From Klebsormidium nitens (lineage: Eukaryota; Plantae; Klebsormidiophyceae): a stretch of 64,000 bases of DNA. Each line of letters opens with the position of its first letter. Within the stretch, counting starts at the first letter, position 1. Of the stretch, positions 31,801 through 43,761 are shown piece after piece. Both the position numbers and the translations under genes were made by a program. The stretch spans positions 57,852 to 121,851 of the forward strand of contig DF237198.1 in assembly GCA_000708835.1 (NCBI GenBank), written 5' to 3'. The notes beneath the pieces were generated by a model, which made no database searches, was not told the origin of the DNA, and saw only the letters and a list, made by a program, of their open reading frames with translations.

Positions 31801-33829
31801 CGAGAGCGAGGACGATTCGGACGAAGATGGGGCGTTTGGTAGGGCGTACGAGCTGGGGGGTCCGGAGGCCCACGTGGGCGGAAATGGTTCCGAGTACGAC
31901 GACGAAGAACTAGAGGAGGTAGAAGGTGAAGAGGAGAGCCGAGGCGGACCGAAAGCGCAGGCGTACGATTCGGACGGGGAGGAAGAGACGGAGTATGACG
32001 ACGGCAGTGACGTGGACTCGTGGCGGACGGTGCGCGCGGACCGGGGGGCAAGCACGGACGATGCGGAGTCGGACTTTGAAGAAGAGTTTGACGCCGGAGA
32101 GGATACTGGAGCACGGGGCGCGCTTGGGTGGGGTCCGCTTGAGTACCAGAGCACGGCGGAAGAAGAGATTGGGGAAGAAAGAGAGGAGGAGGGTGGAGAA
32201 GAGGAGAACGAAGGAGGGGAGAACGACGAAGATGAAGAGGAGGAAGAACTAGAGAGTGAGGGGGGCAATGAGGAACTTGAGGCATCTGGGCAAGAGGGGG
32301 AACTAGAGCGGGAGGAAGGAGAGATCAGCGACGGTGAGGAAGACGGAAGGAGGAGAGGAACGGGCACTGCTGTGGAGAGCCGATGGGACTCTGACGAGGA
32401 GCGGAGCGACGGTGAAGAAGATGACGTCAGTGATGACGCCCGGGGGCTGCGGCCGGAGTGGGCGACGGCGGACAGCGACTCGGAGGCGGATGAGGAGGTG
32501 CCACGTGGCGGGATGTGGGCGTCATCGGGAAGCGATGCTGAAGAAGGGGACCGAGGTACAGTATCGAAGTTGAGGGGGGGGATTGGAGACGAGAGGGAGA
32601 TGGGCTGGGTCAGTGCGGAGAGGGATAGTGACGTCAGCGATGACGAAGGGGCCCCAGAGAGGGGGGGTTTGAGCGGAGGGGAAGGTCCAAGGGGCCGTGT
32701 CAGTATGGAGTGGCTCAGTGACGAGAGTGAGTCGGATGAGGAGTTGGAAGATTTCGAAGAAGAGGGGGCGCGAATGGGGCGCGCGGGAGAAGGGGAAGAG
32801 AGCGGGCAATCGGGGTGGGCTGGTTTTAAAGGATTGGATGAAGAAAGCAGCGGAGATGGTTTTGGGAGCAGTGGGATCACTGAGCAGAATGGGCGACCCG
32901 TAGAAGAAACAGCAGGCTCGTGGATCGCCCCTCCAGGCGACGAGATTGAACCAGAGTTCAGTGCTGCTAAGGAGGGTTCTGATTCCGAGGGAGAAGATGG
33001 ATGGGATGCTGAGCTGGCGGTCCCTGGTTGGTCGGGTGCTGACGTCATGGACGACGCGTCAGCCGTGTGGCTTCGCGGGGGAAGTGCCGACTCGGAAGAA
33101 GACGAGCCGTTCGAGGCGGGTTCACGGGTCATGCGCAGTGATGACGCGAGCGACCGCCCCGCTGATGACGTCAGAATAGGGGTCACTACGGAGCTTGGAA
33201 GCGAAGGCGAAGGAAGTGATAGGGGCAGCGCGAGAGAGAGAGAAAGGAGAATCGAGCTGATCGGTGAGAATGGGAGATCGCGGGAAGCGCTGGTGCTGCA
33301 TTTGCAAGCGAACGACCGGGAGGACAAAAGGGGAACGCAAGCCGTTGTAGAAAACCTGGCAACACCCGTCCTTGTAAAGACGGGCTCGGATTCAGATGGC
33401 TGGGACGAAGATTTCGTTGAGGAGCCGTTCGTGGACGCTTCGCAGAGTGGAAGGGGTTACGGAGGGGGAGCTGACTCGCACCCATTGGACGAGCAATCAT
33501 TGGTTGCCGCCATTGCAGGTGGCGAGGAAGACGTGCTGCCTCAAGAGGACACGTGGCATGCGTCTAGTGAGGGCATGAGCAGCTCAACTGAGAAGACGTT
33601 GGCGGCCGATGCTCCTCAATCAGATGCTACTAGAAAGACAGGGGATCCGGCACTTGTTGATGCCAGTACCAGTGCGATTGGAGTAATGGAGAGGGGAGTT
33701 CCAGCGGATAAATATGAAAGCTTAGCAGAGTCTCCTCTGCTTAAGGAATCGGTCAGGGAGGAGGACGAGCGTCCTTACACAGGGCCGAGTTTCTTCGATG
33801 AGTGGCAGCAGCCGGCGGTCAAGGGATAG
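19814..33829 (+). CDS. Giant NYN-domain (PIN-like) ribonuclease with multiple LOTUS/OST-HTH-like domains and long acidic linkers (MARF1/MNU-like), ~2,911 aa
   Basis: 14 exons, all splice phases compatible: 19814-20490, 20917-21093, 21468-21585, 21976-22166, 22434-23334, 23710-24234, 24547-24725, 25289-25486, 25890-27498, 27895-28098, 28603-28784, 29318-30385, 30767-30926, 31283-33829 (8,736 nt). NYN motifs VFWDIEN, LKAYG, EMADKAII, IIASGDKGF, DYTYDW. LOTUS-like motifs SLPGKYAKVVGHPLKLAEFGLKKLQDLASFDDV, LLARYEAVFGRPMD...LAAIPDI, YPKLRKIYRARTGKEL. Confidence 0.85.
28872..29049. mobile_element. Small foldback/MITE-like element in an intron of the NYN-LOTUS gene
   Basis: Left arm 28872-28910 aaaccaagaaagataatagtaagccaagataatagtaag. 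The right arm 29011-29049 reverse-complements to aaactcaagaaaataatagtaagccgagataataataag. Each arm holds two copies of a ~15-bp subrepeat, around a ~100-bp C/A-rich spacer. No clear target-site duplication. Confidence 0.7.
30078..30224 (+). repeat. Coding minisatellite, 7 x 21 bp (GFGVSGE-type heptapeptide)
   Basis: Units such as gggtttggggtttctggcgaa, gggtttggggcttctggcgag and ggctttggcgtttctggtgag encode GFGVTGA GFGVSGE DSGGFDE GFGASGE DYGISGD GFGVSGE EFGVFGE. Confidence 0.9.
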
Positions 33830-34804
33830 AGCAAAAGCAGCAAACGCTGTTTAAAGTTCCTAGCGAGCGAACTGAGTAACAATGAAACATTGATCAGTTG
33901 CGAGAATAAGCACGCGACTTTCTCACTTTGTCGGCAATCATTGAAGGTCAAAGACGACGGTTTCTCAACCTGCGAGACATTGAGTTGCAGTGCATGGCTG
34001 GTACTTCTAACGACTCACGGTCTTCTGCCTCAACTATGACGGTAGATTTCAGGATAATTACACGAGCGTGAGTCACGGTAAAACGATCCTTGTAGCTTTT
34101 GACTTTTGATTGGACCGGATCGATCCCGCACCTGTGGCATGCATTGTCTGTACTAGGTAGTACTGTATCCATATGCACAGCTGTTAATTCAGGTGTCGTT
34201 GAGGCCGATCGGAGAGTCATGCAGCTAGCTCCGCGCACGCGCAATCCGCGCTGGACGGCGATGGTTTCTTTTCACATGCGCCGTTGTCAGTGCGCCCATA
34301 GGCTTCTCATGGCATGGTGATCACAAAAGCTTAGCGAATTGATGATCGATCGATCGATGATAACTCTACATGCCGCGCTCTTTGTGCAGAGCTGGGTCCG
34401 ACTAATTGCCAGCTTAATTTAGCCATGAGTGACGTGAGGTTAAGAGCATTTGTGTGACTGATCCGTGTGCGCATGCATTTACGATTTGTAGCTGCATTTA
34501 CAATCGTGCACAAGTAAAGCAGCAGGAGTCACTACACTCGGAGCCCGGCGGCTGCACTTTCCGCGCTGCGTTTCCTTGCAGTCTTCATGATCCGGTGAGA
34601 CTAAGGAAGCATGCAGCGTGGCAACGAAGACCGTCAAGATCCTTGAGCTAAGCAGTGTGTAGTCCCTTGATCGCATCTTGGCAACGAGAGTTGTAGGCTG
34701 ATCGAGCGTACAACTCGATCGACCGTCGGACAAAGCAATCAGCTGCCACTTAGTGTGACTACAGTGGGAGCATGAGCCGCTCAGTGTTTCAAGTGGCAGC
34801 ACCA

Positions 34805-37800
34805 TCAGTGCTTCGCGGCTATGACACACCAGTTCGACTTGTCAAAGAAGTGATCCACAATGGTGCAACCTCCGACCTCGTTGACTAGCCTGCCAAGGAA
34901 CAAGTCACCTTGTTAGTAGATATACAAGGAACAAGTCGACGGACTTAAGGCCGTGCAAACATGTTCAGTACCAGAATTAACAAAGCGAGCAAGAAACCGT
35001 GTAGAGCACGCACGACCCAAGACCGAAGGCCGGAGACCAAGTGTAGATGAAGCAAGCACAATGCTAAAAGACAAGTCAAGATGCAAAACAGCGATCCAGT
35101 GATCAGGTTACCTTTCCAGTTCCCCCTCCACGAACACGTGGTAGTACCGCTCGTACACGAGCGCTTGCTTCAGGGGGTCCCGCCGTGCCAGTCCCCGCTC
35201 CCCGTCCCGGTCGGCAACCCCGATTTCCACCCGGTGATACGGCAGATGCCACGGCACAAAGTACTCCTGGACGCTCCCCGACCCGTCCCCCGGAAGAGGG
35301 GATCCCTCCGAGGCTTCGCTCAACTCTATACTCGTATCTGCTTGGGCGGAGCTTCCGGAAGGTGGGCTGTCGGGATTCTCCGCTGGATCGAGAAGCACTT
35401 CTCCTTCCCGCATACTTACTTTGACCTCGTTTGCCGCCCTGTCAGGCTTAGGAGCCCCGGCCCCGCTTTCCGGTATGCTCTCGAGCGTCCCGCTCGGCCG
35501 CCGCTCTCGGAGCGGACTTTCCGAAGCATCCGACGGCCCGTGTCCATTCTCCGTTCCTTCTCCCGTGGTCCCAACTTCATTTCCACCTCTGTCTGCAAGT
35601 CCCATCTTTTTTCGCCCACTGCCCCGCCCTTCTTCACTCGTCCTCTCCCCTGCCAAACCCTCCACCCCCGAGGCTTGCTCCTGGGCACTCCCCCTGTCGC
35701 CCGGTTGCTTTCCCCCGGGCGCCACCAGGTCCTCCGGCCAGGCCTCGGTCCCGATCAGCGGCGTCCACTTCCCGAGCAGTTTCGGGTCTTCCTGCTCCCG
35801 CGCCCAGACCGTGATTAGAATCCGGTCCCCGCTTTTGACGATGCGCAGAAGCTCCCGGATGGCCTGCCGGCGGCGCGCATCGGAACTCAGGTGGTGCAGA
35901 ACCGCGATCGAGATGGCTGCGTCGCACGAGGCGGTGCGGTACGGCAGCCGGAGCGCGTCGGCGACTGCCACGTCGAAGCCCCTGCGGAGAAAGAACGGAA
36001 CGGTCTTTGAACTTGTGAGTGGGCGGGGAAGGCAGTGTCAACAATCTTGCTGGTGGAAATATGCAATTTTTTGGCAAAGAAAAGAAGGTTCAGGACCTTG
36101 ATGACCAAAGATTCTGGAACTCAATCAGTGTTGGCGCAGCATGAGAGCAGAAGCGATACGTGATACAAGGCAGAGGCCCGTCTCGCAAAGATGAAGGCTG
36201 GGAGCTTTCGCAAGCACACTTCCATACGCTTTGATCAAAGCACCCGGTCTGCAGTGACAAGGAGGAAGAGATGCGCACCGCTTGCTGGCCATCCCGACCA
36301 GAGGCGCGCTGATGTCACAGCCGAGGAAGAAGCAGGAGGGGTTGAAGCCGAGGTACTTCCCTGCATCAGGAGAGGCCCAAGAAAGTGTCGTAACTTGAGT
36401 GTGTATCGACCAAAACCTTTCGAAACAGTCTGCTCAATCCACGGAGCAAAGAGGAAAAGGGAGGCAGAGACAAGACTCGATAATGAAAAGGCAGACTATG
36501 TCAGAATTCCATACTTTGATATGGACTTCGCAAGTTACAGAGTGCTCTTTGCCTGGCACGAGTCTTTGACGACATCACAAGAAAGCATAGCGCCTGCCGC
36601 GAAAACTCGTCGAAACAGCGCAAGCTCTTATCATTATCACTCATGCTTTGTTTGGGGATCGACTGCGCTTATATATGGCAACCAGCAAATGGGAAGCGCT
36701 GATCAGAAGAGACTCGTCCTACGGCGCCTTCTACTTGGAGGACAAGTTTCTGTACACAAAAAGCTTGCCGTTTCCAAATTCAAGCCAACCAAAAAATGAC
36801 CAATTTGAACGGCTTGTTGGGACTAGGCCCATTGGCAGACATTGCGTTTTCTCCTCAGAGGAAAACGGACTCACCGTTGCCGCAGCCCGCATCCACCACG
36901 AGGGATCCCTCTGGCAGGCCCTCCAGGAACTGTGCAACCTTTGGCCACTTTGCAAAGCGCGTGGCGCTGAAGTGCATTGCGATGGCGTCATACACTTGGT
37001 GCACGTGCCGCTTCTCGATCTCGGGGACCACAAAAGGCGAGGCACCACCCGCACCAGAGCTCTCCTCGCTAAGTAGCGGGTGGACCGACCCTTCTTCCGG
37101 TGTCAATCTTGGTAAGCATTCCGACCTTGATGTATTTGTCGATCCATCCCGTATCTCTACGGCCTGGGGGCTGAGATTTGTCCTAACGTCCAGGGCTTCC
37201 AGCGCCTCTAAAGTTTTGTCCGTTGCTGTTGCCAGATCCATGCCAGCCTCTCCAGTTTCTTGCACCCCGCTCTCTCGAGCCCCTTCCATCCTCATCCACC
37301 CCCCCTTCTCTGCCCTCTTCGGCCCCCCCTCTCGCACGCCCTGCTGGGAGTCGCAGCTCTCGGGGTATTCACACCGGCAGGGGCCCGTTCGCACCTTCCG
37401 GAAAGTTAGCGAAACCCTTCGCCTCCCCCTGAGTACTATTTCCCCTCGTACAAGGTCGCTTTTCCGGTGCGGGATGTAATGCTGCCAAGCATACCGCGCT
37501 TCGCCTGTCAGAACGAGTAGGGAGCGAGGGGCTAGAAACAGGCACCGCCGCTCGAGAAGCCCATCGGTGGTGTCAGTACTAGACGACCCGTCGGGGGCCT
37601 GAGCTTCTTGACACTGCCTGCGGAACTCCATGACGGTGGGCCCAGCCAGAGAGAGCGAAACGATTGCCCCATGGAAAGCGGAGTGGGTATCGACGTGAGG
37701 GGACAGCCCTACGCCTGCGGGGTACTCATTCACCGTAAGCTGGTCTAGCGGCCAGGATTGCTCCGCCTCTGTTTGTTTTCCGCCTGTAGCGTCATCTTCC

Positions 37801-38408
37801 GAACAAACTTGTTCACACTCCCCTGTAAGCAGCCGCTCGACCCTCTGTGATACTGATTGGAGGGGTGGTGGGAACGCACCCAGCTCTGCCGTCGGGTCCA
37901 CATTCCGAGACTGATACTTGAACTCATACCCGTAATGCTGCACCCGCCGCTTGGCCAAGCGGTGCCAATTCCCATCATCCACCGCCGCCACCAGCTCTCT
38001 CTCTTCCTCCTCAGAAACAAAATCAGGAATGCAAACAAGCCCCGGTATCCCAACCTGCTCTCCAGAGACACACACCTCTGGCAGCGGAGGCCCTGTTTGC
38101 AGCCCCGCCGTTTTCAGCTCTGCATACTGGATACTGAGGACCCGGCCTCCTGCAGCCAGACAAGGCCTCTCGTGAAGCGCCGCCCGTGCTTCCTGTGCAG
38201 AGGCGCTATCCGCAAAGCTAACGTACAGCCGGTTCCCGGACTCCCCTGCTTCTTGGAGGTCTGTGATGGTGCCGAATGCCGCAAAGATTGTGCGGGCCTT
38301 CAAAACGGACACCCCGACCGCAGGGCCCAAGTTGGCCACGTAGAGGTGGCAGGTGGGGGGGGAGCCGGGCTTGGGGCGCACGAAGTCCCCTACACAAGCT
38401 GCAACCAT
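34805..38408 (-). CDS. ALKBH8: tRNA wobble-uridine modifying enzyme ALKBH8, fused RRM + AlkB dioxygenase + Zn motif + Trm9-type methyltransferase, ~856 aa
   Basis: Exons 38408-36875, 36360-36279, 35981-35112, 34889-34805 (2,571 nt, in frame). Motifs: RRM LYVANLGPAVG, AlkB RRVQHYGYEF / QLTVNEYPAGVGLSPHVDTH / RVSLTFRKV, CRCEYPESCD, MTase VYDAIAMHFSATR / DAGCGNGKYL / AVLHHLS / YERYYHVF / DKSNW. An acceptor just upstream of the ATG implies a 5' exon further up. Confidence 0.95.
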
Positions 38409-39067
38409 CCTGTAAACAGTGACAAGAAGGAGTGCTGAATTATGGCAAGTTCAGCAGGACAACCTACGGTCAGTGTTGCTAGGATTAAGTTTAGCTCTAA
38501 CTAACCAGGAGGCCTGTCTCGGTTTTACCCGTATTACTCAACGTTGTTGCCAACCGTGGGCCCGGTAGAAAGTACTGGGCCAGTGAGCGAAAGGAGCCAG
38601 TTGTGGCAATTTGGTCCCGGGGTTTCGTGCTCTGGGGGATCGAGAAAAGGTTACGCTCCAAGGTTGCAAGCAGACCCGGCGGTCGTAGGGTTCAAGTTAG
38701 GGTTAGCAAGGTTCGGTGAAAAGTGGCGGGAGAACACTTTGGAAGAAAAGGATCTGGCTTGAAGTTGCAATTGAATTTGAATGCATGAGCAGGAAAATTC
38801 AGAGAACAGCGTCCAGCCTGAGGGGATGAAGATGGCCGCATCAGCGGCATCACGGCGTCCAGAGAATGCTGCCTCTAAATAGAACTGAAGTGTCGGTCTG
38901 AAATCAAATAAGATTTCTTACAAGCTCATTGAAGAAATGTTGAACTGTGGTTCTCTATAGCAAGGTGCAACGGTATGATCTCGGATTGAACAGCCTGAAG
39001 GCCCCTTCAATGCAGGGGCTGCTGCTGTCACTACCCAAAAGGATTCTTGCTAGAGGCGTGGTTGACC
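38409..39067. promoter_or_regulatory. Probable bidirectional promoter region (ALKBH8 / RAP1) with site II-like and telomere-like motifs
   Basis: 659 bp between divergent ATGs. TGGGCC at 38557 and 38576; TTAGGGTTAG at 38697-38706. Motif function is inferred from plant promoter conventions. Confidence 0.4.
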
Positions 39068-42000
39068 ATGGAAGCAAGTGCTCAGCTCTTTGTCCGTTCA
39101 GATGGGAAGCGAATGTGCTTTTTCCTGCCCCCATCTGGTGAGGGTCACTGCCAGCTTGCAAGCATAAACATGGGATCTCATTCATTTGCTATGAATTGTC
39201 TGGCTACATTGCAAGCTGCTTGTTTGAAGCTGGGCTGGACTTTTGACTGCAATGTCTCCTCTAATGCTGATTGAAACTCGTACATCAAGGATGCTGGACT
39301 GACTTTTCCTATGTTGTTGATCATAGTGCGGGACAAAGATGGGGTGGTCCGGAAGCAAGTCAAGGAATTGGTGGAGAATTACGGTGGGAGGTTCAGAACC
39401 CCAAGCCTAAGATTGCCTCAGGACGACGTGGTGATTCAGTTGGTTCATGTCGGCGATGCTGGGAATGAGAAAGCATTGCAAGCTGCGAAAGCACGAGGCG
39501 AAAAGGTTGGGCATCCTTTCGCGTTTTGGTTGCATCATGGCTTTTGCAAGTGCAGGTTTGTATCGGCTTTGGCAATGCCAGGTGTTCAATAAAGCCTGCC
39601 TTGTCAGAAACGTTTTGCTTACATCAATGTTGTCTTCCCCCAGTTAATAGACCATTTGTCATTGATAAAGGTCAGTATCGTCGTTATGTGGGGAGAGGAT
39701 TCGAGAGATTGCTGACGTTCTGCTGACAGTCTTCTCTGTGAATCTGCTTTCAGCTGTACTTTTGTACATATGTCCTGGACAGCGTCAAGAAAGGGATACT
39801 ACTGGTAAGCCAGAAAGGTTATCCACTCCATGGACATGGAGACTTCTCTTGATAGTACAAGTCGTTCAAAGGAGTGTTTTAGTTGATCAGAGGAACTGGA
39901 ATTCTGAGGTTGATACTCTTCAATTGAATCTTGTTAATCGCTGCCCTTTCAGTCAATCTCCAGCTTTGTCATCTCTTCTTCCTGTGGCCGTTGTTATTTC
40001 ACTCTGTCTTCATCACTGTTGGCTCCCCTCTCCCTTTTTAATCAACTTTGCTCTTTGCAGAAATCGGAGGATTATGAGGTGCATCCCCCTCCCCCATCGG
40101 CCGGTCCTAAGCGGACTTACCACCACTGGACTCGAGAGGAAGATAAAGCCATTTTAGAGTATGCATCTAAAAGGTACGGCCTTTGTTGATTAAGTTGAGA
40201 ATGCCTCAAGTAGACCGGGGCGCATTTGCTTGCACGAAACCCTCAGAGCCCTAAAACCCTAAATGGTTCAAGCAGAAGAAGGATTGTTTCCTTCAGGAGG
40301 AAAAGTTGAAAAGCGCACGAGTTTTCTTATAATCACAATCCCCAGAGCTCTTCTGAAGCACTTGGTCGGCCTCAAAATTGTGCGCACCCTCAAACACCAA
40401 AACCCTAAATCATGTTTTTGCTCACTGACGAACTTGCAAAATCAAGCATAAAGTGTTGCAGACACGTCAGCGCTTTGATTGCCGCTGGGTTTTTTGGTGT
40501 CGCAGTATCTTGGCACGAAGGGGTGACATCTTCTGGCAGGAAGCAGAGCGTCAGAAGGTGAGAAAGAATCCAGATCTCCCTCCTGCTTGATCAGCTGCAA
40601 TCCAATTCAAGAAAGCGCGCCCTTAAGTAGCATCGTCTCTCTATGTGACTCGATTGTCACAAAGCCAGGCGATTTTGGCGAAGACCATCTCCTTATATCG
40701 TCTATCTGCTTGGACCGTAAAACGGCTCTTACTATTTTCCTCCTAGAATGTTCTTTCCTCTAAGTGAAACAATAGCAACAATCTGTACATACACTAACTT
40801 CACTTCTTTCTGCCTCGAACTGACGCCTGTCTCTGTAGTCCCAGCTAAAGAAGCGAGAACTATCGCCTGCCTCTTTGCATTGCAGGTCACCCCGCACAGT
40901 TGGCAGGCCATGAAAGAGCGCTACAACAAGTATCTCGCCCCTGCTCAGAAGCCCAAGGCCAACGCCCCACCTGCCGGACACCCCCCAACAGACCTTGCGC
41001 TGAGAGCTGGATCAAGCCAGCCTCACCTCCCAATCACCCCTAGCGCAAACGAGCATGCGGTTACGCCTGGCCCGGCTGTCGAGAAGCAAACGGCTGGGAG
41101 TGCTAAGCAGAGTCAGAAAGCGGGGTCTGAGGGTCCCAAGCAGCGGGAACGTGAGCAGGAAGTGCAGGCAGTTAATTCAGCAGCCACACCTGGGGCAAGA
41201 GTGCCGGAGCCGTCTCGGGGGGGACCAAAGAACGGGCTTACGGATGCCGGTCAAAAACAGCGGGAAGCAGGACAAGAGGCTGTGCCTGTTCATGGCCCCT
41301 CAGTCAACGAAACCGCCCCTCGAAAACCGCAAGGGAAGCAGCCTTCGGCTAAAGCGGTTCCTGAGCTTGCGCAACAAAACCAAACCCCTCTCCAGGCGAC
41401 CTCGCACCCGAAACCGGGCCAGAAGGCTCCACTTTTGTATACCAGCCAGGCAGATAAGCTGCAAAAGCAGCCCCTGGGGAAAAGTGAGCGAGCCCCTGCC
41501 CAAATACCCCCCAAACCGCTTCAGAAAGTCCCTCCTCCGGGTGCTAACCAGCCAGCCGAGCATCCACAGAAGGCCCCCGAACCGAGTCCTGTCCCAACCG
41601 CCCGACCACTCCCGCCCAAAACAAGTCAGCCCGCCCAATTGCTCACATCTTCGCACGGTGCGGCCGTGCTGAGGGCCCCCCCAAAAGCTGCACTTTTGAA
41701 GCCGGTTCCTGTCCAGATCCTTGGCGCGGCAGCGGCTGTGCGGGAGCGGGCGCACAGGGACGAGGTGGGGGCTGGGCAAGCTCCTACGGTTCCGCGCGAG
41801 GCTCCCTTCACCCAGGCCCCGGACTTGGAGTTCACCGTGCCAGAGACACCCCCGGAAACGTGGGACGGTTCTCAGCGAGAGGAGGAAGCATTGGGGAAGC
41901 CAGCAGAATTTGAGATGAATGAAGGTGATCAACAGAGGGTCGCGGCTGTGGAGCGTAGGGAAGGCAGCGGCGGTTTGGAGGAGGCGAGAGCGAGAGAAAG

Positions 42001-42901
42001 AAAGCGTGCGAGGGATGATGTAGGGGCCGGGGCGGCAGCAGCACCGGGAGTGGTAGGCGGTGCCAAGAAGCAGCGGATAGAGGCTCAGAAACCCTCTGCG
42101 AAAGGAGTCCTGCCAGGCTCGCCTCGTGAGGAACTGTGGTTTGATGTCTTGCCACCTGTTAAAGAACAGGAGCGTCACGCAGATGGAGGGGACGGCGCTC
42201 AAGCAGGAGTCGGACCATCGAATGCAGCCCCTGAAGCCAATAGCCGCCTGCCAGCTGTCACCGCAAAGGGGCCTTCCGACGACAGACATAGAGGACGAGG
42301 AGCCGATCTGGGGGGAAGTATAGAGATGGGCGAAGCCGGACAGCATCAACGAGAGCCTGACGGGGAGGTCGGACCTGCAGAAAAAAGCGGGACCGTAGGC
42401 GGAGAGAACGCTGAAACAGGTCGAGTCGCAGAGATCAGAGGGGAGGGAGGGCGCGGAGAGGATAGAGCCTCCCAGGGCCTGACAAAGCAGTTAGAAGAGA
42501 CAAAGCGGCGGCGTTTACGAAAAGCAAACGGGGAGCTGGTCGGGGAAGCCAAGAGGCGCGGGGCCGAGCCACCGCCCGCCCGACCGTCCGATGTGCCGCC
42601 AGAGAGGGTGGCCGTGATCCGGTCGTGGGTGGCGGACTTCGTGAAGCAGTACGGTTGCAGCCAGGATGACATCATTGCAAAGGTGATAGAGGCGTCCGGC
42701 GACTTCGAGGCTGCACGACCGTTGCTTGATCCACGGAGTCGGAGCGCTGCGAAGGGCCCTGTTTGGAGTTTAAGAGAGGACCATGTGCTTTTAACACAGC
42801 CGGTAGATGAGAGAGATGTGCACCCCGAGTACGTCAACCTTCGAGAGGTTTTTGGGAGTACTGCAGTGGAGAGCAGACTGACATTTCTGGGACGGTTATG
42901 A
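39068..42901 (+). CDS. RAP1: Telomeric RAP1/TERF2IP homologue: BRCT - single Myb - long disordered linker - Rap1 C-terminal (RCT) domain, ~826 aa
   Basis: Exons 39068-39137, 39327-39505, 39754-39804, 40061-40173, 40506-40557, 40886-42901 (2,481 nt, in frame). BRCT: QLFVRSDGKRMCFFLPPS...RKQVKELVENYGG...LYFCTYVLDSVKKG. Myb: RTYHHWTREEDKAILEY...RGDIFWQEAERQKVTPHSWQAMKERYNKYL. RCT: IIAKVIEASGDFEAA...GPVWSLREDHVL...LREVFGSTAVESRLTFL. All three match human TERF2IP motifs as I recall them, in the same order. Confidence 0.9.
40249..40409 (+). repeat. Telomere-type repeats in RAP1 intron 4
   Basis: Tandem CCCTAAAA-CCCTAAA at 40249-40263 and AAAACCCTAAA at 40399-40409. Confidence 0.7.
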
Positions 42902-43761
42902 TAGAAAGAACCAGGAGTTTACTACTCACTGCACCCTGACGAAGGCCAAGCTCTGTAGCGTCCATTTTCGTTGCACCTTCGACGATGCCACATTGGCTTT
43001 CTCAGTACCAATAATTGCAATTGGCAATTAGTTGTGAGCTAGCAACCGACTCTTCAGATCAAAAATCGACGCCACAAATGTGCACGTCCTTCTCATGAAT
43101 CCCATTATGAATCCCATTGAAGCTCCCGCGGCCCTTACAGTACAGGAATGATCGGTCTAAGGGTATTCGTCGGCCATATACCAGCTAATCTACGTTTCAG
43201 ATGACGATAAGCAGACGGCCGGAGACGTACGTTGCAATTCCATTGAAAACGTGCAAGCTGCATTTGCATTCGCTCATGATTGATGGCCGCGCTGAGTGAC
43301 GAGTCATGCAGCTAGGAACCGAACCGCAACTCACGCATGTACTCCTATGTCATGATGCAACCACGTACTGCTGCATATGAGCAGCTCGATCCTTGATGCT
43401 GCCATGATCGATTCGAATCTAGCTTCCGAGGCGTCAGCAATGACATAGCAAACTTATGGACTCGTTCACGGTTGCATCGGCTGCTGATTCCAAAGCTTAA
43501 GATATGTTTGCGAGGCCGGCCGATCACTGGCACTAAGAAAAATAAACCTCGCCTAAACGGTTCGCGCGCACCACACACATCCAGCTCATGAATAGTGGAC
43601 TAAGACTGGTTCTTGAAATATTACGGGTCTTTGTGTTCTTGATTTGCCCCTGCACTATTAAATCCAGCTACACCCAAGTCCCTCGACCGTTTTAGCTGAA
43701 CACGGCCGCAACCAAGCCGGTGTACCCTTTGGTTAAAATAACCTAGCTTGATTGCAGCGCC

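Follow-up and report, generated by a model that had tools for sequence, protein, structure and literature searches.

An expressed six-exon gene for a RAP1/TERF2IP orthologue in the streptophyte alga Klebsormidium nitens

Does the green lineage possess RAP1 (TERF2IP), and in what form? The question was raised by a locus in a 64,000-nucleotide stretch of Klebsormidium nitens DNA (assembly GCA_000708835.1, contig DF237198.1, positions 57,852 to 121,851 of the forward strand; hereafter the window, in which all positions are counted). A first-pass annotation, made from the letters alone, had proposed here a complete homologue of this telomere protein whose N-terminal domains are spread over micro-exons. 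Pfam, PDB, fold and RNA evidence agreed in supporting this description of a BRCT-Myb-linker-RCT protein in a streptophyte alga. Sequence comparisons identified the product, KFL_002490150, as a vertically inherited RAP1/TERF2IP orthologue of streptophyte algae. It is quite likely that this expressed orthologue acts as a partner-recruited telomere adaptor in contact with Ku and DNA-PK, and that its gene was lost toward land plants.

The interval 38785-43056 on the forward strand is an expressed six-exon gene (Table 1). Queried with the last exon, the protein database yielded the 826-residue KFL_002490150 (P0001) of Klebsormidium nitens at 100% identity, and the splice product of the six exons corresponded to this deposited protein letter for letter. 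The coding sequence measures 2481 nt; an in-frame stop codon precedes the ATG at 39068, and all introns display GT..AG borders with pyrimidine-rich acceptors. The exon sizes read in the first-pass annotation, five small exons and a last one of 2 kb, were exact. Likewise, the in-frame splicing of the micro-exons onto the last exon was recovered from transcripts, all five joints being present in RNA contigs from four runs, each of a different study, and a single 2719-nt contig (run X13, 38969-43040) joined the six exons. Intron-retaining contigs were also seen at low depth, as pre-mRNA would give. Transcripts started at 38785-38792 in four runs. Since RNA depth was zero across the approximately 360 bp separating the gene from its divergent neighbour (38461-38766; four runs), the libraries are of RNA and not of DNA. 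The Pfam matches run unbroken across the joints (BRCT_2 over exons 1-4, Myb_Rap1 over exons 4-6), and the splice sites are therefore not wrong. The gene model was less hidden than supposed: public annotation already holds the identical protein, deposited as "hypothetical protein" with precomputed Pfam BRCT_2 and Myb_Rap1 matches. The RCT, which was thought perhaps to be tagged already, carries no Rap1_C tag there.

BRCT_2 scored 29.3 bits on the whole protein and 33.4 bits on residues 1-180 (cut-off 27.3), and Myb_Rap1 reached 45.6 bits (cut-off 27.1) with positions 1-58 of its 59-position profile covered by residues 123-178. When residues 1-185 were compared with the PDB by phmmer, human RAP1 chains were the sole matches (8rd4_D, E 4e-8, residues 4-174; 1fex_A, E 6.6e-6). 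The AlphaFold2 model of the same region (predicted local distance difference test, pLDDT, 80.7) found its best Foldseek matches in the PDB in two entries of the N-terminal domain of human RAP1, 8rd4_D and 7oz0. Against the Swiss-Prot part of the AlphaFold database, ranks 1-10 were taken up entirely by TERF2IP of vertebrates and rap1 of S. pombe (6e-13 to 3e-6), followed by a gap and then by generic BRCT proteins at E >= 1e-4; RAP1/TERF2IP entries were again returned by a cluster search of that database. Identity of the N-terminal region to animal RAP1 was only about 25-34%. The human RAP1 segments quoted in the first-pass annotation were found in the HMMER alignments to 8rd4_D, 1fex_A and 3k6g_A.

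At the other end of the protein, a match to Rap1_C spans positions 3-83 of the 84-position profile at the extreme C-terminus (residues 742-823). Pfam reported it for the complete protein and for a trimmed C-terminus, and reported no Rap1_C when given only the last exon. In a Klebsormidium-type orthologue (P0003), the corresponding C-terminal region scored 26.8 bits, above the Rap1_C cut-off of 24.2. A profile (A3) drawn from an alignment of eight C-termini of the green clade described below retrieved the human RAP1 RCT first from the PDB (8rd4_D, E 5.1e-7; 3k6g_A, E 1.4e-5), and matched budding-yeast RCT chains over their full length at marginal E-values. The AlphaFold2 model of residues 725-826 (pLDDT 78) is a helical bundle. 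For this model, Foldseek ranked the human RAP1 RCT chains 3k6g_A and 3k6g_B first in the PDB, at probability 1.0. VIA-align gave Z 4.9 over 89/92 residues of 3k6g_B, and Z 6.0 with a root-mean-square deviation (rmsd) of 1.8 Å over 40 residues when yeast RCT was compared with the last three helices. By profile, the protein possesses the RCT; the structural support drawn from this predicted model is weak and agrees in direction with the profile result.

An exhaustive phmmer search with residues 1-180 against 1.84 billion representatives (E <= 1e-3) gathered 228 proteins, and names were looked up for 30 of the best 150. The best named matches were vertebrate TERF2IP, Balamuthia TERF2IP and proteins of Chara and Mesotaenium, with one frog exception. 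The Chara braunii orthologue (GBG69065.1) has 1012 residues and that of Mesotaenium endlicherianum (ME000167S01841) 690. In a tree of 38 BRCT-Myb regions, the Klebsormidium, Chara and Mesotaenium proteins formed one clade (98/93 support) together with P0009, P0015 and P0057, the last two adjoining Mesotaenium. P0009 and P0015 originate from Logan RNA assemblies (ERR12684111, SRR8128902-08) and P0057 from a EukProt transcriptome. An RCT-like C-terminus was observed in all six members of this streptophyte clade, and P0015 displayed all three Pfam domains. Among 37 full-length matches, Myb_Rap1 was found in 36, BRCT_2 in 36 and Rap1_C in 21. As the Chara and Mesotaenium orthologues share a single supported clade with KFL_002490150, vertical inheritance in streptophyte algae is indicated, and Klebsormidium is not the sole green carrier. 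Two word-indexed searches added no further member: the one with the 37-sequence full-length alignment returned Klebsormidium only, being swamped by low-complexity linker words, and the one with residues 1-185 of P0015 returned P0015 itself.

The range of RAP1 given in the first-pass annotation (animals, fungi and trypanosomes) proved too narrow. Besides the Chara and Mesotaenium proteins, BRCT and Myb matches were recorded in the dinoflagellate Effrenium voratum (P0056/P0160) and the amoebozoan Balamuthia mandrillaris (P0012), and a match over the Myb region only in the glaucophyte Cyanophora paradoxa (P0130). By these matches RAP1 is older and wider than the three groups, and a Rap1-type Myb in a glaucophyte, a dinoflagellate and an amoebozoan points to a very old eukaryotic origin. 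A separate feature of the search was the occurrence in many matches of three or four separate Myb_Rap1-like stretches (P0006, P0020, P0033, P0034, P0051, P0080). Such repeat-Myb proteins included the frog exception (1428 residues, annotated BOD1L1-like, four stretches), a mite protein and several from metagenomic contigs; with their repeated Rap1-type Myb units, they differ from ordinary RAP1.

Among known systems, human and vertebrate RAP1 (TERF2IP; 8RD4, 7OZ0, 1FEX, 3K6G) displays the same order of BRCT, single Rap1-type Myb, flexible linker and RCT, and is the best match by sequence, profile and fold at both ends of the Klebsormidium protein. The latter is twice as long (826 residues against 399) through its linker, and all six members of the streptophyte clade carry an insertion of 7-8 residues after the first BRCT strand with respect to the human protein. 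S. pombe Rap1 has the BRCT-Myb N-terminus (Foldseek E 2.7e-6, residues 8-179) and the RCT in common with it. Not DNA-binding itself, the fission-yeast protein is recruited by the duplex-binding Myb protein Taz1. It further possesses an additional Myb-like domain and a Poz1-binding motif, whereas nothing comparable was detected by Pfam in the Klebsormidium linker. S. cerevisiae Rap1 shares a homologous BRCT and RCT, but binds telomeres and promoters through a tandem Myb (Rap1-DNA-bind), a module absent from the Klebsormidium protein. The plant TRB, TRFL/TRP1 and TRFL7 proteins are likewise Myb-containing and telomere-associated, yet they lack both BRCT and RCT and are possible partners rather than relatives. 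Their Myb (TRB/TRFL) is of the telobox type that reads TTTAGGG directly, whereas that of Klebsormidium is Rap1-type and remains below the generic Myb cut-off.

The linker of about 550 residues is presumably disordered, and the whole-protein Pfam scan found no domain in it. It is fast-evolving outside two stretches, FTVPETPPETWDGSQREE and LEETKRRRLRKANGELVGEA, which may be docking or nuclear localisation motifs; LEETKRRRLRKANGELVGEA in particular is a possible nuclear localisation signal.

The single Myb claimed in the first-pass annotation stood, with Myb_Rap1 above its cut-off and no match to a second Myb or Rap1-DNA-bind module (PF09197) at E <= 10 over the whole protein. Because the protein combines a single Myb of the Rap1 type with a conserved RCT and lacks a tandem DNA-binding module, an adaptor mode of action is proposed, in which, like RAP1 of humans and fission yeast, it would not itself bind telomeres sequence-specifically. 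By the same analogy, the RCT would dock on a Myb protein binding telomeric duplex. According to a 2026 preprint (bioRxiv 10.64898/2026.01.29.702503), plant TRFL7 is TRF2-like and occurs in K. nitens; the TRFL7 lineage is for this reason the leading candidate partner, with TRB and other TRFL proteins as alternatives. At the chromosome end, the BRCT and Myb would engage Ku70/80 and DNA-PK and assist in blocking end joining. DNA-PKcs is kept in K. nitens, Chara and Mesotaenium (PMC10419180). In human RAP1, a basic BRCT patch (K39, R40, R55) and the Myb sit on KU70/DNA-PK and block LIG4 (PMC12221994). HMMER and MAFFT alike paired human K39 and R40 with R32 and K33, which are also basic. Over the streptophyte clade, an invariant Arg occurred at the first of the KU70-patch positions only.

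Several observations weigh against this reading. With KFL_002490150 alone, Rap1_C scored 16.2 bits (E 0.011), below its cut-off; when the 826-residue product was checked against Pfam, Myb_Rap1 and BRCT_2 thus stood and Rap1_C did not. A single-sequence phmmer search of the PDB with the C-terminal 133 residues gave chance matches only and no RAP1, which was reached with the profile of orthologues. The likeness of the modelled RCT to the human one held in rank, 3k6g_A and 3k6g_B being its best matches, and not in strength (Foldseek E 0.02, template modelling score 0.44-0.48, rmsd 7 Å, together with the VIA Z of 4.9). Human R55 aligned with R45 in HMMER but with T48 in MAFFT, R45 and R47 lying nearby, and human R133, in the N-terminal arm of the Myb, had no confidently aligned equivalent. 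The Myb region is basic (isoelectric point, pI, 9.85; net charge +6), which leaves room for some direct DNA contact. Finally, DNA-PKcs persists from bryophytes through gymnosperms (PMC10419180); there was therefore no joint loss of RAP1 and DNA-PKcs, unless RAP1 persists in these plants too.

RAP1 was probably lost in land plants, at least in angiosperms. No land-plant homologue was found, the evidence being indirect with bryophytes to gymnosperms outside the direct search. Among the best 150 of the 228 matches, no protein beyond the streptophyte clade preferred the profile of that clade. In the ESM Atlas clusters of at least 50 members with Myb_Rap1 shown for two queries, the commonest phylum was always fungal, chordate or arthropod. 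Land plants are very densely sampled in sequence data. The best fold match to the BRCT-Myb unit among Arabidopsis Swiss-Prot models was XRCC1 (E 1.6e-4), a generic BRCT, and no likeness beyond the BRCT was observed in these models. According to a table in a 2024 review, Arabidopsis lacks TRF2, TIN2, TPP1 and RAP1 (PMC11577926). The loss proposed in the first-pass annotation fits these data as far as they reach; the gene would have disappeared along the lineage leading to land plants or, at a minimum, along that leading to flowering plants. The opposite view, that RAP1 survives in land plants (in bryophytes, ferns or gymnosperms at the least) and was missed through divergence, micro-exons, poor annotation or unnamed matches, is unlikely. 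P0009, P0015 and P0057 could be land plants, names cover the said 30 matches, and DNA-PKcs, a client of RAP1 in humans, persists up to gymnosperms (PMC10419180). Yet the profile preferences, the fungal, chordate and arthropod clusters despite the dense sampling of land plants, the generic fold match in Arabidopsis and the review table all speak for loss.

A RAP1 orthologue might also have its main job away from telomeres, as a chromatin or transcription regulator, or as a modulator of end joining, at telo-box promoters or breaks. Extratelomeric functions are well known in yeast and mammalian RAP1 (PMC4924339, PMC6356271), and PMC11287191 describes plant telo-boxes as regulatory sites bound by TRB proteins. 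The telo-box-like octamer AACCCTAA is enriched in the window (7 copies against 1.0 expected, a number reached by no shuffle), with copies in the promoter of the gene itself and in its intron 4. Such a telomere-repeat-like element ahead of a gene for a telomere protein could have a regulatory role or could simply be a motif common in plant promoters. Nothing here ties the protein to these motifs, however, and RAP1 occurs at telomeres in all studied lineages, even where it has additional roles. An off-telomere main role, which would be compatible with the adaptor reading, thus appears rather improbable.

Direct binding of DNA, at telomeres or at interstitial telo-box sites, in the manner of budding-yeast or trypanosome RAP1 and without a TRF-like partner, is quite unlikely. 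It would draw on the basic character of the Myb region, on a KR pair just before Myb helix 1 conserved in all six clade members, and on the capacity of the human RAP1 Myb to contact DNA once positioned by DNA-PK (PMC12221994). Yet there is only one Myb, and PF09197 gave no match. The generic Myb_DNA-binding model scored 15.5 bits (cut-off 24.4) over 15 residues only. Helix 3, HSWQAMKERYNKYL, is the same as in RAP1; its HSWQAMKERY is of Rap1 and not of telobox type, and human RAP1 shows no appreciable DNA binding alone (PMC12221994). The conserved RCT speaks for a protein partner.

That the protein is no RAP1 but an unrelated BRCT-Myb protein, alike through convergence or chance, or that the gene is a contaminant or was transferred, is suggested by the Rap1_C score below the Pfam cut-off and the low N-terminal identity to animal RAP1, and is hardly credible given three domains in the same order, each nearest to RAP1 by sequence, profile and fold, while contamination and gene transfer were excluded by spliceosomal introns, a G+C content like that of the surroundings and orthologues in two other, related streptophyte algal classes.

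The features of the locus are collected in Table 1. The seven upstream ATGs of the 5' untranslated region (UTR) belong to short upstream open reading frames; the last of these starts at 39010, counts 43 codons and overlaps the main start codon, which suggests translational control. The divergent neighbour (36855-38426, reverse strand) begins its transcripts at about 38421-38426 and shares with the RAP1 gene the silent promoter region of approximately 360 bp. Its first exon codes for an RRM-like N-terminus and an AlkB-type 2OG-Fe(II) oxygenase (Pfam 2OG-FeII_Oxy_2, 67 bits), and the end of its open reading frame (ORF) resembles the start of a methyltransferase domain; on these domains it may be ALKBH8-like. 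Elsewhere in the window, the 2-kb bin 32001-34000, which lies within a large ORF region, showed a strong strand asymmetry (GC skew 0.37, AT skew 0.23).

Table 1. Coordinates of the RAP1 gene of Klebsormidium nitens, its predicted domains and the telo-box-like motifs of the window
Feature	Position	Strand	Description
5' UTR	38785-39067	+	about 280 nt; seven upstream ATGs (RNA contigs)
Exon 1, coding	39068-39137	+	70 nt; residues 1-23; BRCT start
Exon 2	39327-39505	+	179 nt; residues 24-83; BRCT core
Exon 3	39754-39804	+	51 nt; residues 84-100; last BRCT strand and helix
Exon 4	40061-40173	+	113 nt; residues 101-137; BRCT end, short linker, Myb helix 1
Exon 5	40506-40557	+	52 nt; residues 138-155; Myb helix 2
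Exon 6, coding	40886-42901	+	2016 nt including stop; residues 156-826; Myb helix 3, linker, RCT
3' UTR	42902-43056	+	RNA contigs end at 43009-43056
BRCT domain	39089-40078	+	residues 8-106; split by introns 1-3; Pfam BRCT_2
Rap1-type Myb	40127-40954	+	residues 123-178; split by introns 4-5; Pfam Myb_Rap1
Linker	40955-42598	+	about 550 residues; rich in Ala, Pro, Gly and Glu; low-complexity
Motif FTVPETPPETWDGSQREE	41831-41884	+	residues 471-488; conserved among four Klebsormidium-type orthologues
Basic motif LEETKRRRLRKANGELVGEA	42491-42550	+	residues 691-710; conserved among four Klebsormidium-type orthologues; just N-terminal to RCT
RCT	42599-42898	+	residues ~727-826; predicted helical bundle of two three-helix halves
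AACCCTAA, promoter copy	38697-38704	-	TTAGGGTT on the strand of the gene; about 85 bp upstream of transcript start, in silent intergenic promoter region
AACCCTAA, first in intron 4	40255-40262	+	telo-box-like
AACCCTAA, second in intron 4	40401-40408	+	telo-box-like
AACCCTAA, remaining copies	19487, 31577, 54954, 56227		window scan

Literature searches found no paper naming RAP1 together with Klebsormidium, Chara, Mesotaenium or streptophyte algae. In papers citing PF08914, this model is merely one of several MYB search models, and plant telomere reviews treat RAP1 as a human or yeast protein only. The present result is an orthologue assignment in a lineage from which RAP1 had not been described, and neither a new mechanism nor a new kind of system. 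The domain matches are already visible in public databases; the protein itself is unnamed.

Plant telomere biology has no agreed shelterin, and the finding bears on what plant shelterin is. A complete RAP1 in three streptophyte algal classes, expressed in Klebsormidium, implies that the green lineage began with a RAP1 subunit. Together with TRFL7 and the retained DNA-PKcs, it offers a testable question, namely whether the RCT binds TRFL or TRB proteins and the BRCT binds Ku. The algal RAP1 also prompts two further questions, at what point the gene disappeared and what took its place. A tentative scenario, which we hold possible rather than probable, is that streptophyte algae retain an ancestral, animal-type end-protection module of TRF2-like TRFL7, RAP1 and Ku/DNA-PK. 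This module would have been dismantled stepwise toward flowering plants: RAP1 would have gone first, at about the time plants moved onto land or thereafter, to be followed by DNA-PKcs in angiosperms. If true, such stepwise dismantling would explain the lack of a RAP1-containing shelterin found in Arabidopsis.

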